Source of the DNA: Octopus sinensis
Taxonomy: Eukaryota
Length of the DNA stretch: 64,000 nucleotides
Direction of reading: 5' to 3'
Assembly (NCBI RefSeq): GCF_006345805.1
Contig: NW_021824848.1
Span: 1,707-65,706, forward strand
Shown here piece by piece: positions 180-44,188 of this stretch (positions within the stretch are counted from its first letter, which is position 1; each line of letters begins with the position of its first letter). The notes below the pieces were generated by a model. The model ran no database searches. It was not told the DNA's origin and worked only from the letters and a program-made list of their open reading frames with translations. Made by a program: the position numbers and the translations under genes.

Positions 180-266
180 TGTGTATGGTAATGATTGCCG
201 CTTATCCGCACCTACATTATATTATTAAAGCAGGTACCAAACACATAACTACAGGGTTTTTAAACA
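180..266 (+). CDS. Gene A exon 3 (internal, phase 1-1) of secreted Cys-protein family: xCMVMIAAYPHLHYIIKAGTKHITTGFLN
   Basis: TACTAAC branch point (146-152), polypyrimidine tract and CAG acceptor (177-179), GTAAGT donor at 267; 87 nt open frame; homologous to exon 3 of genes C and D including flanking intron sequence. Confidence 0.9.
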
Positions 267-645
267 GTAAGTATCATTCGTTTAAATGACATAATTGTTG
301 TTTGCTGAAATAAAAGGTTATACATGTCTGAGCTTGGCATTGTCAAAGCACTTCATTTGCAATAATATTTCAACTATTCCACAATACTGACATTGAAAAA
401 ACAAAACATAATTCACCAGCGACAACTGAACTCAACACCTTATGCGATGTAGTTATTGGCAAGATATTAAGTTCTGCTCATAACAACGTGGTTCCATTTG
501 ATAGTTGGAGCAAGTATCTTCAACGATAGACATGAAATGACAAAATACCTTGCGGTTGGAATTTGATGTATTTGACACACACATATGTGTGCGTGTGTGT
601 GTGTGTGTGTGTGTTTGTCTGTGTGTGGAGATATATATATAAATA

Positions 646-2125
646 ATCTCTAAATTCGAGCCTACTCTAAGCTACTAAGAATGCGTGTGGCAACTTGAAG
701 ATCCACCATATATATATATATATATATATATATATATATATATGTGTGTGTAATAAAATAGAACATATGCATATATATAAACATATATGTACGTACCTAC
801 CTCTACATGTACATATACACGCATATATTGTTACAGGACACCAAAAAGACGTCGAACACATAGAGAGACGAAAAACATAGACAACAAACCAGGAACAAGA
901 CAAGCAAAAAAAGGAGATACAGGACAATAAGCACACGAAAAATCCCCTTCTTCAGTCGCTAAGGTTTCATCTACTAAACGTTTCGAAGGATAAAAGCGAG
1001 ACGTATACTTCGAAGAAAACTTCCTTCCTGCGAAAAGCAAATCAATTAAAATTCTGAGATCTTTTCGCAGAGGGGTAAAAAAGCAAGACGGTAACGACAG
1101 TACAAACATATAAACAGAAAAAATATATATAAAACAGTGGGAAAATAAATATATAACAGTGAGAGACAGGACAAGGAGAACAAGATAAGAAGGGCTGTTA
1201 ACGCCAGACGAAAAAGTATTGCAAACGCTGGATTATAGTGGACGACGAGAGAGAAAAAATGTCGACCAGTAGCCTTAGAAGGCGGGCGAGAAAAGACAGG
1301 ATAGCAGTTACGACGAAGTATCGTCGCAGATGGACGAGGAATGGGGAGGAGGAGCAAGAGGAAGAGAGAGAAGAAGGGGAATGGTGCGAGGAGACCATGA
1401 AGAATGGTGAAAGGAGAGAGAGAGGAAGAGACAAGTTAGTGAGGGAAAAAAGACGAAAAAGGAATGGGAGAGAAAGAAAGAAGATGCAGAGTCGCGTGAG
1501 AGTTAATATCAAGGCTAACTTGATAAACAGAACAATCTTACTTATAGGGTGCGTGCGTTTAGTCGTATAATATGTTAATAAAATAGAACATATGCATATA
1601 TATAAACATATATGTACGTACCTACCTCTACATGTACATATACACGCATATATGTGTACAGGACACCAAAAAGACGTCGAACACATAGAGAGACAAAAAC
1701 AGACACAAACCAAGGAACAAGACAAGCAAAAAAAGGAGATACAGGACAATAAGCACAACGAAAATCCCCTTCTTCAGTCGCTAAGGTTTCATCTACTAAA
1801 CGTTTCGAAGGATAAAAGCGAGACGTATACTTCGAAAAAACTTCCTTCCTGCGAAAAGCAAATCAATTAAAATTCTGAGATCTTTTCGCAGAGGGGTAAA
1901 AAAAGCAAGACGGTAACGACAGTACAAACATATAAACAGTAAAAAAAATATATATAACAGTGAAAAATAAATAAATATATATATATATATATATATATAT
2001 ATATATATATATATATATATATATATTATATATACAGATACCGCCAGTCTATCGCATGTGGTGTGTGGATCTTCAAGTTGCCACACGCATTCTTAGTAGC
2101 TTAGAGTAGGCTCGAATTTAGAGAT
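646..2125. mobile_element. Element with 61-bp perfect terminal inverted repeats (646-706 / 2065-2125) and ~400-bp internal direct repeats (~751-1150 / ~1576-1975); Penelope-like terminal-repeat architecture
   Basis: Both repeat pairs seen directly; CTGAAGA core on the - strand in each direct repeat; the class is an inference. Confidence 0.55.
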
Positions 2126-2156
2126 ATTCTCTGTGGTTAATGGCGTGAGTCCTGAT

Positions 2157-2349
2157 TGGAAGAAGAAGAAGAAGAAGAAGAAGAAGAAGAAGAAGAAGAA
2201 GAAGAAGAAGAAGAAGAAGAAGAAGAAGAAGAAGAAAAGAAGAAGAAGAAGAAGAAGAAGAAGAAGAAAAGAAGAAGAAGAAGAAAAGAAGAAGAAGAAG
2301 AAGAAGAAGAAGAAGAAGAAGAAGAAGAAGAAGAAGAAGAAGAAGAAGA
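2157..2349 (+). repeat. (GAA)n microsatellite
   Basis: Direct; explains the poly-K/E/S ORFs at 2133-2450. Confidence 0.95.
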
Positions 2350-40811: not shown

Positions 40812-41012
40812 TTTTGCTGGTAATCAAATAAAAGCGAAAACAACAGTTTCCTGTTCTACCATCCCAATTACATTTCATTGTCGGCACATATTTCACACCC
40901 ATATTTGTATTTTCCAGGGAAACATTAACTTTGGAATTTTGGATGAGCATTTCATCAACCTTGAGTTCTTCGACAATCTCTTCTAGATCCTTAATCACTT
41001 CATCAGTTTTGT
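40812..41012 (-). CDS. Gene D exon 2: KTDEVIKDLEEIVEELKVDE...PTMKCNWDGRTGNCCFRFYLITSK
   Basis: catattttcag acceptor, GTATGT donor, 201 nt, phase 1-1; paralog of gene C exon 2. Confidence 0.9.
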
Positions 41013-42473
41013 CTGAAAATATGGTAAAATGCATTTATCAATTGCTAGGTTGCAAGACGCAATGAAAATTTTAGGAAAATAAGAATAAGAAATAAGTGGA
41101 AATTTTACCGTGAGTGTGTTTATTATAAGGCACAAAACAAAAATGACTTTCCTCAGACACAACAGAATATGCTTCAACACACGAACTCACATAAAGAATC
41201 TTGCAAACCAAATTCAAAAATGAAATACAATGCAGGAATTTGTTAATATATTCTTCTCTTTATACACATTTATATAAAAATTTTTGGACGAATGCGTTTT
41301 TTTTTTCCTTACTATTGTTACGTTGCAACAAGTTGGAACCAATATTTATGAGTGCATATATGTATATGTGTGTGCGTGCGCGTGTATGCGTGCGTATGTA
41401 TGGATGTCTGTATGCATGTATGGTCGAGGGCGTATCTTCTAGTGTTTAGGGTGATGCAATCACGATCGCCAGACGTTGGTTCAATTCCTGGACCGGGATA
41501 TGCGGTGTGTTCTTGAGCAGAACATTTCACCTCACATTGTCCTGTGGTCACTTCCAGGTATAAAGTGTTGTTCACTGTACACCTATTCAGGCAACGTCGA
41601 TCCGATTGATGGAAGGAGTTGGCACATACATTTTATGTAGTCATTCTCTTTTGGTGCCTTATAATTTAACACACTCACCGGTAAAATTTCCGCTTATTTT
41701 GAGTCAAAACTATTGAAAAGGTTACAAAACGCAACGAAAATTTTAGAAAGATAAAGAAATAAGTGGAAATTTTACCGGTGAGTGTATTAAATTATAAGGC
41801 ACCAAAAGAGAATGACTCACCCGAGACACAACAGTATATATACATATATATATAATAATAATAATAATAATAATAATAATAATAATAATAATAATAATAA
41901 TAATAATTAAGGGTAAAATTAATTAATCAATTAATAATTAATAATTTTACCAAGTTGTTCGGTATGTTAAAAGAACCATCATCGGTAACCTTATACAAAA
42001 AATCTATAATTATAAGTATAATTATAATTAGGGTTCAGCAAAAATTGCTTCACAACATACCGAAATTTAGAAATAGCATTTAAATACTATTCTACTACCA
42101 TAAGATATCTCCCTCTTTACTTGCGTGAGTTAAAGAGTATTGTTGTCTGGGAGATATCTTATGGGAGTGGAATAGTATTTAACTGCTATTTCTAAATTTC
42201 GGGTTGTGGTGAAGCAATTTTTGCTGATCCTAACTATAATTATGCTTATAACTATAGAATTTTTGCGTGTTATATGTGTAATATATATATATATATATAT
42301 ATATATATATATATATAATATATATATATATATATATATATATATACATATATATATATATATATATATATAATATATATATATATATATATATGTAGGT
42401 CCCGGTTGATCCGGGTTAACCACAGTAGTAAGGTACTCAATACATAGCAGAGTAAAATAATTATTATATAGAA

Positions 42474-42590
42474 GGAGCTTCTAAGGACTAGTACTGTTTC
42501 CTTCATAGAAATCTTCAGGAAGCTCGGAAGCTCAGGATGCTTCCTGAAGATTTCTTCTTGAATGAACAGTACTAGTCCTGTAGAAGCTCC
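42474..42590. ncRNA. Pair of inverted type I hammerhead-ribozyme-like motifs (42474-42523 -, 42535-42590 +), Penelope-like
   Basis: Consensus GCTTC-CTGAAGA-stemII-GAAA-CAG-loop-CTG-TA-GAAGC; each copy lacks one nucleotide. Confidence 0.55.
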
Positions 42591-44100
42591 TTCTATATAT
42601 AATAAATATATATATATATATATATATATATATATATATATATATATATATATATATACACACGTTTTATTTATTATTTTGCACATTACTTAATCATTGT
42701 TATATGTTTTATCTTATATTTAATCTTCTCTATATGTAATTTTTCTAAATGGTATAATTTATTTTTCATTATGAATTGATAAAAGGTGGCTTATTTTCTA
42801 ATTTATATATATCTCTATAAATAATATATATATATATATATATATACATACATACATACATACATACATGCATGCATGCATGCATGCATACATACATACA
42901 TATACACATACATACATACATACATACATACATACATACATACATACATACATACATACATACATACATACATACATACATACATACATGCATAGGTATT
43001 ACACATACAGGCGTGGCTGCATAGTAAATGGTTTACCTCCCAAACACATGGTTCTGGGTTCAGTCCAACTGGACAGCTCCTCGATAAATAGTGCTTTCTA
43101 CTATAGCTTTTAGCCGACTAAATCTTGTGAGAGATTTTGTAGATGCTAACTGAAAGTACCTCTTCGCAAATATGTATGTATATATATATATATATATATA
43201 TATTATATATATATATATATAATATATATATTTATATATACATATTTATATATTTATATATATAACACATATATATGTGTGTGTGTATGTATGTATGTGT
43301 ATATGTATGTATGTATTTATGTATGTATGTATTTATGTAACGGGAAGCTTTATGAAAATAGACAAAAGACGAAGGCAGGTTTACGGAAATAAACAAAGAC
43401 GAAGGCATGTGGAATACAAACAAACAATTGTATTAGTATGGCGCTCAGGAAATATAAATAAAACAAGTCTTTAACGTTTCGAGCCTACGCTCTTCAACAG
43501 AAAGATACACAGAGAAAAAACACAGAAAGAAGGCGAGAAAAAAAATATGCGTGCAGAGGCTAACGAATCAACATGGCGATCTGATTTCGGCTAGAAGTCA
43601 AAGATCAAACGTGAGACGCAAGAGCGAAATTAGGGGAGATAATATGGGAGATAATAGGGTATGTATGTATGTATGTATGTATGTATGTATGTATGTATGT
43701 ATGTATGTATGTATGTATGTATCTATCTATGTATGTAGGTGTTTTTGTATCTGTGTTTGTCCTCCGCCGTCACCTTAGCTTTCTGATTCGGCAAAAGAAA
43801 CAATAGTATAAGTAGAATTCGCTAAAAATCCTAAATACTGGGGTTCTATTCCATTGAATATAATTCTTCAAGACGATGCCCCAGCATGGCCGCAGTCTAA
43901 TGACTGAAGCAACCAAAATTTAAAAGATTAAAATACATATCTGTGTGAGTGTATGAACGTGTGTGTATATATACATATTTATGTATCTAGATTTTTGTCT
44001 ATCTATCTACCTTTCTCTCTATTTGTTTGTATGTCTATATATTATAGATAACTGGTATGTATACATATCTATATTGTGTTGTAAGAGATGAAACACTTAC

Positions 44101-44188
44101 CTTCACTTATCTCCGGCACAATATTCACTACAGCACATGTTCCTAAACAGAACATCAGGGCCAAGTAAAAAGCTGCACTGGTCATCAT
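44101..44188 (-). CDS. Gene D exon 1, signal peptide: MMTSAAFYLALMFCLGTCAVVNIVPEISE; full protein 196 aa
   Basis: ATGATG start, hydrophobic core, GTAAGT donor in phase 1. Confidence 0.9.

Follow-up and report, generated by a model that had tools for sequence, protein, structure and literature searches.

What do the four paralogous genes encode that lie between positions 180 and 44188 of a repeat-rich octopus contig, and what might their products do? The DNA in question, here called the window, is a stretch of 64,000 nucleotides (nt) that corresponds to positions 1707-65706 of C1319, an unplaced 65.7 kb contig of Octopus sinensis. It is animal DNA of 28-40% G+C, rich in microsatellites, retrotransposon fragments and repeats resembling short interspersed nuclear elements (SINEs). 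We find that it carries a tandem cluster of four spliced genes, A to D, for small secreted proteins whose disulfide-locked, all-beta architecture is predicted, and we hold this genetic and structural description with high confidence. The four genes, in window coordinates and with exons in order of transcription, are as follows.

180-266; 3475-3689, forward strand: gene A, 3′ half only, the 5′ exons lying beyond the contig end
10619-10712; 13088-13306; 14722-14805; 17639-17955, forward strand: gene B, 237 amino acids
33711-33621; 28739-28536; 24879-24796; 22279-22107, reverse strand: gene C, 183 amino acids
44188-44101; 41012-40812; 39052-38966; 37962-37748, reverse strand: gene D, 196 amino acids

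The models were built by reading the DNA around motif matches and around blocks common to the paralog regions. A six-frame motif scan placed C-x-W-x6-C(C) at 28567-28596 and 40843-40872 on the reverse strand and at 13249-13278 on the forward strand, and C-F-x16-G-C at 3573-3629 and 17743-17799 (forward) and at 22125-22181 and 37808-37864 (reverse). The result is 14 coding exons separated by ten introns, all of them GT..AG and in phase 1, with an exon 3 of 84 or 87 nt in each of the four genes. A preliminary description of the cluster had proposed just such a set of 14 phase-1 exons with canonical splice sites, both Cys motifs in every complete gene and an exon 3 of 84/87 nt, and our reconstruction returned the same lengths and the same outer limits (180 and 44188, the start of A exon 3 and the ATG of D). 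Splicing the exons as listed yields products of B and C that are identical, letter for letter, to RefSeq XP_029653854.1 (LOC115227064) and XP_029653857.1 (LOC115227065), and a product of D that is 100% identical to XP_029653858.1 (LOC115227066 isoform X1), so that the proposed lengths of 237, 183 and 196 residues are exact. In O. vulgaris, the C-terminal half of CAI9731749.1 is near-identical to the partial product of A (exons 3-4). The 5′ exons of A were found neither in the 1.7 kb to the left of the window nor elsewhere in the assembly, and the two exons recovered agree with the earlier description of a 3′ half. RefSeq annotates B, C and D as ‘uncharacterized’. The gene models were thus already known, and with two orthologs also tagged DUF4773 in UniProt, to call the cluster ‘cryptic’ or undescribed was an overstatement. 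That it was ‘largely missed’ by the open reading frame track is true of that track, but merely reflects that these are spliced eukaryotic genes. The individual exons are:

180..266, forward strand: A exon 3, 87 nt, phase 1-1 with AG/GT borders, encoding xCMVMIAAYPHLHYIIKAGTKHITTGFLN
3475..3689, forward strand: A terminal coding exon, 215 nt including the stop, with C-F-x16-G-C
10619..10712, forward strand: B exon 1, ATG and putative signal peptide (MIRITNIVIFSLLVFCFGIYAAVN...), part of XP_029653854.1
13088..13306, forward strand: B exon 2, basic linker with C-I-W-x6-C at its end, the CC pair having lost its second Cys
14722..14805, forward strand: B exon 3, 84 nt, exon-3 Cys replaced by Ser, part of the exact RefSeq model
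17639..17955, forward strand: B terminal coding exon, C-F-x16-G-C and a long tail, matched by the array paralog P0014 (see below)
22107..22279, reverse strand: C terminal coding exon, early stop after ...GCTSKQY, 3′ untranslated region (UTR) reaching ~21860
24796..24879, reverse strand: C exon 3, 84 nt
28536..28739, reverse strand: C exon 2, acidic linker and C-K-W-x6-CC
33621..33711, reverse strand: C exon 1, ATG and putative signal peptide, 5′ UTR reaching ~33821
37748..37962, reverse strand: D terminal coding exon, C-F-x16-G-C and two further tail Cys
38966..39052, reverse strand: D exon 3, 87 nt, encoding predicted strands 3-5
40812..41012, reverse strand: D exon 2, acidic linker and C-N-W-x6-CC
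44101..44188, reverse strand: D exon 1, ATG and putative signal peptide

Several of these assignments can be checked against relatives. Exon 3 of A matches an A-like mRNA (L043, introduced below) at 74% of nucleotides and its peptide is near-identical in the O. vulgaris ortholog (P0004), while the A terminal region aligns with the same mRNA over 3464-3924 at 83%, 3′ UTR included. Exon 3 of B was chosen as the best phase 1-1 AG..GT candidate, having a pyrimidine tract, a GTGAGT donor and a resemblance to its paralogs, and it is conserved in the O. bimaculoides ortholog (P0020); the early stop of C likewise recurs in O. bimaculoides. The second RefSeq isoform of D (X2, P0002) lacks exactly the 29 residues of the 87-nt exon 3, a skip that stays in frame because every exon is of phase 1-1. 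A TATAAATA box lies ~140 nt upstream of the D ATG.

Are the genes transcribed and spliced as predicted? The preliminary description had named spliced reads as the check to make, and spliced transcripts do exist for the C ortholog and for an A-like gene. The first is an RNA-derived contig of 911 nt (L044) from run SRR7158633, which shares a 90% cluster with O. bimaculoides XP_014780266.1, the C ortholog; the second is a contig of 927 nt (L043) from run SRR16213284 that encodes an A-like protein of 201 amino acids. The family coding sequence is uninterrupted in both of these short contigs, which must therefore derive from spliced RNA. Against the window, L044 gives exactly four blocks, 33821-33618, 28741-28530, 24881-24796 and 22280-21860, at 88-93% identity (91% for C exon 1, 91.5% for exon 2, 88% for exon 3 and 93% for the terminal exon), which add the UTRs and otherwise end within 2-6 nt of the predicted C exon borders. 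These overhangs of 2-6 nt are chance extensions of local alignments: read directly, L044 joins the exons exactly as predicted for C. Comparison of gene C with L044 also gives a ratio of nonsynonymous to synonymous substitution rates (dN/dS) of 0.39 overall, 0.63 in the leader and linker, and 0.26 in the Cys domain, the last of which indicates purifying selection on that domain. As for L043, a full-length family transcript of octopus type, it shows 91% nucleotide identity to D exon 1 and 83% to the A terminal exon, and it comes from a species other than O. sinensis, O. vulgaris or O. bimaculoides. According to PMC13340311, run SRR16213284 contains RNA-seq reads of a Mexican sample of the mealybug Planococcus ficus, and it seems likely that the contig reflects either cross-sample contamination from an octopus library or a mix-up of accessions.

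The predicted proteins share one plan. At the N-terminus of every member a short stretch leads into a hydrophobic core, 12-14 residues long, and small residues then precede a conserved (A/V)VN; the residues at -3/-1, as read from the sequence, are small (TCA|VV; IYA|AV), and the model of D draws a helix at residues 3-18. This leader is presumably a cleavable signal peptide. It is followed by a linker of 55-64 residues, drawn by AlphaFold2 as a low-confidence helix in both D and B, whose net charge was tabulated for eight proteins: seven carry -6 to -14, and B carries +2. In every member the core domain that comes next measures 99-101 residues, counted from its first Cys to its last. Within it, in D numbering, C77, W79, C86, C159 and C177 are invariant or nearly so, while C87 (the second of the CC pair) and C98 (at the start of exon 3) co-occur in most members and are jointly lost from B and its O. 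bimaculoides ortholog, and also from the second domain of two longer proteins (P0015 and P0019). From this joint loss we infer that C87 and C98 would pair; C159-C177 would join the last two strands in the final hairpin, and the domain as a whole would be held by three disulfides. Genes C and D show the complete set of features by which we define the family, namely the four-exon phase-1 plan, both motifs, the exon-3 Cys and a domain of 99-101 residues; A shows them for the part that is present, and B shows all but the CC/exon-3 Cys pair. The charge of the domain varies from about neutral in C and D to as much as +19 in P0014 (isoelectric point 11.9), where the basic domain lies between two acidic regions, one of -14 on its N-terminal side and one of -9 on its C-terminal side.

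AlphaFold2 predicts the domain to be a nine-strand beta meander. Residues 70-180 of D are modelled with block-mean predicted local distance difference test (pLDDT) values of 75-91 from a 13-sequence alignment, in nine consecutive strands (74-80, 83-89, 97-104, 107-114, 117-124, 130-137, 140-151, 155-165 and 170-181), the third to fifth of which are encoded by exon 3. Despite an identity to D of only 18-20%, B is predicted to have the same nine strands (pLDDT 71-90). In both, the strands alternate hydrophobic with polar or charged residues. What tempers this prediction is the depth of the input, since the alignments hold 12-13 sequences from a single genus. Foldseek searches of the PDB with the D and B models returned no match at E <= 0.001 (best E 0.23 and 0.12), and a profile search of all PDB sequences returned nothing, so that the predicted fold has no significant solved relative. 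The non-significant matches at the top of the Foldseek lists are avidins and streptavidins, fatty-acid-binding proteins and neuraminidase propeller blades, with coronavirus spike chains and acyl-CoA thioesterases also listed for B; most of the top entries are up-and-down beta sheets.

These lists raise the possibility of a small-ligand carrier, in which the sheet would close into an up-and-down barrel of avidin, fatty-acid-binding or lipocalin type around a hydrophobic molecule, vitamin or chemosignal. The avidins and fatty-acid-binding proteins that head the lists are meander barrels of similar size, and the alternation of hydrophobic and polar residues in the strands would suit one. However, best E-values of 0.12-0.23, TM-scores of at most 0.35 and the lack of any sequence relative in the PDB make a carrier improbable. 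A second structural alternative, an IL-17-like cystine-knot cytokine, is prompted by the superficial likeness of C-x16-G-C-T-x-x-C at the C-terminus of D; an expansion of IL-17 genes is said to have been reported in octopus. The predicted nine-strand meander is not a cystine knot, and IL-17 (PF06083) was absent both from the Pfam matches listed at E <= 10 and from the top Foldseek matches listed; we rejected it, and give it next to no credence. Among other weak Pfam matches, CBF_beta (PF02312) aligned with 37 residues around the CC pair in C, P0013 and P0022 (E 1.6e-4 to 3e-3). CBF_beta is a nuclear protein, and we regard this sub-threshold, partial match as spurious, as we do those to LYTB, Gly_radical, PSI and DUF7479. 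No family member matched any Pfam entry above threshold, and with neither Pfam, the PDB nor Foldseek pointing to a well-characterised family, the earlier remark that this is not a named gene stands.

How large is the family, and how far does it extend? When 1.84 billion cluster representatives were searched by phmmer with gene C as the query, seven proteins were found, of which the named ones are all from Octopus and the rest are read-assembly contigs; a word-indexed search with D and a search with the family profile found only O. sinensis, O. vulgaris and O. bimaculoides, again with read-assembly contigs. In the O. sinensis genome D matches the window contig only, apart from weak matches on contig C13. 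P0014 (LOC115218395), a longer and B-like protein that matches the B terminal exon at E 1.2e-8, in turn finds an array on C13 that runs for 223 kb (23.935-24.158 Mb), all on the forward strand. Inspection of motifs at the array loci gave nine exon-2-type and nine terminal-exon-type units, two of which carry stop codons. With four genes in the window and about nine in the array, the family numbers at least 13 genes in O. sinensis, a count that is a lower bound because it rests on the best candidates, in 3 kb loci and 100 kb of the array. The proposal of a lineage-expanded family is thus borne out, with relatives found in Octopus only. P0014 (C13:24097341-24101122) is also the member that combines the most basic domain with the best sub-threshold match to DUF4773.

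Gene order in O. vulgaris suggests a link between the two sites. On OX597826.1 the A ortholog is followed ~9 kb downstream, on the same strand, by a B ortholog of 237 amino acids, as in the window, and the family there occupies a run of O. vulgaris accessions: CAI9731747 (a fused D+C), -48 (B) and -49 (A), then -53 and -54. From this order and accession run, the window contig most likely belongs beside the C13 array. Tandem duplication is the best explanation for the origin of the family, whose paralogs are now highly divergent (18-55% identity). The D+C fusion CAI9731747.1 (P0022, 342 amino acids), in which the D part stops at ...DNLVG and runs into the signal-peptide region of C (RCAVVNIV...), is an annotation error in O. 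vulgaris. Two-domain members occur elsewhere, in O. sinensis (LOC115218660, P0019/P0023, 419 amino acids) and O. bimaculoides (LOC106872505, P0015, 344 amino acids); these could be real fusions, which all-phase-1 exons would permit, or read-through models.

An expanded array of this kind might instead consist of functionless duplicates in decay, or of artefacts of annotation. The assembly has gene A in truncated form, two array copies carry stops, B has lost one of the putative disulfides, and a fragment of A lies stranded downstream of it:

4504..4572, forward strand: orphan fragment (FKAHYHTHLYKFDGTIGCMRKHF) of 23 codons, with 91% amino acid identity (tblastn) to A residues 64-86

The fragment sits within an open frame ~0.8 kb 3′ of the A stop, no usable acceptor site or frame continuity was found for it, and it is a pseudo-exon, the remnant of a duplication of the middle of the A terminal exon. 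Against decay, the reading frames of B, C and D are intact and conserved in three Octopus species, the Cys domain of C evolves at a dN/dS of 0.26, spliced transcripts exist, a protein has been detected in mucus (below), and B is predicted to keep its fold. For C and D decay is already contradicted by these data, and for the cluster as a whole we find it barely credible.

Might the family descend from a domain that already has a name? UniProt applies the title ‘DUF4773 domain-containing protein’ to O. bimaculoides A0A0L8GLC6 and A0A0L8GK68, the orthologs of D and C. To our knowledge DUF4773 (PF15998) is an invertebrate-wide domain to which no function has been assigned, and membership would therefore not explain a mechanism. 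We could not reproduce the label on either protein with PF15998.10, a profile of 118 positions with a gathering cut-off of 27 bits. The closest approach is that of P0014, of which residues 91-173 align with profile positions 9-101 at a sub-threshold 17.7 bits (E 0.005), followed by its ortholog P0008, also below the cut-off at 15.2 bits (E 0.032). By Pfam’s own criterion, the proteins do not belong to PF15998. A resemblance nonetheless emerges when Cys residues are counted by hand through the P0014 match. The octopus exons that do encode PF15998 read C-x-C-x4-C-x-CC...C and NPPxxC...C...C-x16-19-GC; six of the approximately ten DUF4773 Cys positions are kept in register in the family, and the CC pair and the last two Cys fall on canonical octopus DUF4773 positions, a pattern that would fit either a divergent relative or convergence.

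Several results weigh against such a kinship. A to D and their orthologs give no match to PF15998 even at E <= 10, and the family lacks four Cys as well as the NPP motif that each of the three octopus DUF4773 C-terminal exons carries. A six-frame scan of the genome with PF15998 finds loci at C13:34.9 Mb and C10:65.3 Mb and never the window contig. An hhalign comparison of the family domain with the three octopus DUF4773 C-terminal halves gives a probability of 0.3%, and a family hidden Markov model (HMM) scores 6.9 bits, equal to background, on the open reading frames of the DUF4773 exons, the last two tests being weak ones in that they rest on half-domains from one species. A hand-joined octopus DUF4773 query found no candidates in the large database, and the middle exon of the octopus DUF4773 gene was not found in the stretches examined. 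On balance we lean towards true remote homology, and suggest that the family is probably a stripped-down offshoot of invertebrate DUF4773, in which the NPP motif and two of the original five disulfides would have disappeared.

Where do the proteins act? The sole direct protein evidence comes from the skin. A0A0L8GLC6 (OCBIM_22032142mg), the D-ortholog accession, is listed in a tandem mass tag (TMT) proteome of O. vulgaris skin mucus as down-regulated in senescent animals, with ratios of 0.142 (p 5e-8) and 0.455 (p 2e-4) in two by-specimen table entries (PMC11431876). An in-silico tryptic peptide listed for this entry equals the N-terminus of the O. vulgaris A ortholog and not that of the O. 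bimaculoides protein, which makes it probable that the protein detected was an O. vulgaris member, given the name of its best UniProt match. Together with the hydrophobic leader, this entry accords with the earlier suggestion of secretion, possibly in mucus or skin. The term ‘effector’, applied to these proteins at the same time, would be an interpretation of them.

Given secretion, a disulfide-locked amphipathic domain, an acidic segment before it (followed by another in the array paralogs), tandem amplification, fast divergence of paralogs and constraint on orthologs, we propose a mucosal role in binding or defence; such a combination of features is typical of families that serve recognition and defence outside the cell. 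In this proposal, secretory cells in the skin epithelium would release the proteins into mucus, where the amphipathic, neutral-to-cationic beta domain may bind an extracellular target such as a microbial surface, a glycan or a lipid; the acidic linker might keep the domain soluble or mask its charge, and diversification of the paralogs could widen the range of targets, as in host-defence families. Three observations count against this proposal. Detection in mucus is at the level of a protein group only; no other family member appears among the entries listed in the tables of the proteome study (PMC11431876) or in an earlier mucus study; and, because the domains of C and D are near neutral, not all members would be suited to act as cationic antimicrobials. 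We accordingly treat the role as tentative, with somewhat less than an even chance of being right, while the description of the genes and proteins joined with a role in binding or defence seems to us, as a composite, moderately probable. A more specific version, in which the Octopus radiation of a stripped-down DUF4773 domain would constitute a mucosal host-defence set that attacks or coats microbes, its acidic flanks masking the domain until release, we consider unlikely. Among the family members, P0014 would be the first choice for an antimicrobial assay.

The same mucus entry can be read differently. The proteins might be structural or rheological components of mucus, an abundant matrix, cross-linking or adhesion protein that binds mucins or epithelium and has no part in defence: one member is listed beside mucins and declines with senescence as the condition of the skin deteriorates, the predicted strands are amphipathic and disulfide-stabilised, and tandem amplification looks as if for dosage. 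Identities of 18-55% among paralogs fit diversification better than dosage, though, and the proteins lack repeats, regions of low complexity or rich in glycosylation, and any known mucin-binding domain, which leaves a structural role rather unlikely in our estimation. Alternatively, small, secreted, Cys-rich, tandemly expanded and taxon-restricted proteins match the general profile of venom families, and these could be salivary-gland or venom components used on prey; but it is skin mucus that yielded the one protein, neither the sequence nor the fold searches matched a toxin family, and the searchable literature yielded no salivary-gland data. We think a venom role highly improbable, and favour binding or defence at the mucosal surface.

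Much of this has precedents in the databases. The finding amounts at present to a manual re-annotation, and a correct one, of genes for which NCBI pipeline predictions already existed, and the DUF label on orthologs in UniProt and one member in a published proteome were likewise on record; our search of the literature found no main-text mention of the cluster loci or accessions, and a search by Pfam identifier was equally empty. New here are the definition of the family by its four-exon phase-1 plan, six-Cys framework and paired Cys loss, the number of its copies and their confinement to Octopus, a predicted fold without a significant PDB match, and the tentative derivation from DUF4773. Cephalopod genomes hold many taxon-restricted gene arrays of unknown role, and we know of few cephalopod secreted immune or mucus effectors that have been characterised. 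Against this background the cluster offers a clean, tractable example, with small genes, a confidently predicted fold and one mucus member that tracks senescence. Should a binding or antimicrobial activity prove true, at least 13 octopus genes would gain an annotation, DUF4773 a first lead and octopus aquaculture a non-invasive welfare marker. The host-defence version, if true, would mean a new class of cephalopod antimicrobial proteins and the first functional handle on the DUF4773 proteins of other invertebrates, such as those of locust hatching glands and oyster hemocytes.

The remainder of the window is dominated by repeats. An interspersed repeat of ~200-240 bp (61-90% identity, at least nine copies) lies mostly within the introns of A to D and looks like a SINE-type element. 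Beyond the cluster are degraded retrotransposons lacking long terminal repeats (non-LTR) and blocks of near-duplicate retrotransposon sequence:

9038-9235, 15231-15428, 30366-30563, 34392-34589, 39812-40009: copies of the interspersed repeat
25659-25810, 28258-28409, 44562-44713, 44746-44897: related repeat copies
45280-47460 (forward strand), 51917-54425 (reverse strand), 62984-63905 (reverse strand): degraded non-LTR retrotransposons
49695-50387, 50636-51364, 51620-52618, reverse strand: near-duplicate retrotransposon blocks

RVT_1 is recognisable at 46419-46967 (forward) and 52929-54102 (reverse), and zf-RVT at 51917-52618 (reverse). All of the retrotransposon copies are broken by stops and frame changes, and the zf-RVT segment is present in three tandem partial copies. 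Intron 2 of gene C contains a 172 nt duplicate (25092-25263 and 26375-26546, forward strand, 1.3 kb apart, 97% identity) that may be a transposase fragment; its open frame (…EKITESAGWQDDMKFLFHLTRAVRFFEETEKFPTVKFPKIP…) had no Pfam match. Finally, 58230-60040 is ~1.8 kb of nearly pure A+T-rich trinucleotide and low-complexity repeat with a spurious 576-codon frame made of runs of I, L, Y and N, and across 56-60 kb G+C falls to 28% with a strongly negative GC skew.

How, then, does the family compare with systems already described? Avidin and fatty-acid-binding barrels share with it consecutive antiparallel hairpins and a similar length, closure of the family sheet being only conjectured; unlike the family, they have no three-disulfide framework, and there is no sequence similarity between them. 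Antimicrobial peptide precursors have a general design in which an anionic propiece precedes a cationic domain. The octopus proteins resemble them in the acidic linker that precedes a neutral-to-strongly basic domain, predicted to be disulfide-stabilised, and they resemble host-defence precursors more broadly in the mucosal site of detection, the tandem expansion and the fast divergence. They differ in that no processing site was recognised between linker and domain, in a domain of ~100 residues that is far above the size of typical peptides, in the almost neutral domains of C and D and in the basic linker of B. With canonical DUF4773 the differences are approximately ten Cys versus six, the missing N-P-P-x-x-C and mid-domain Cys pair, and the location of the canonical genes at other genomic loci. 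What the two have in common is a layout of signal peptide, long variable linker and then a domain of ~100-118 residues and, by our own alignment, a C-x8-CC with a Cys soon after and a final C-x16-19-(G/K)-C. They also share secretory or immune contexts: a DUF4773 protein is found in locust pleuropodia, as a marker of secretory or immune tissue (PMC6966819), and another marks a cluster of oyster hemocytes (PMC12064177).

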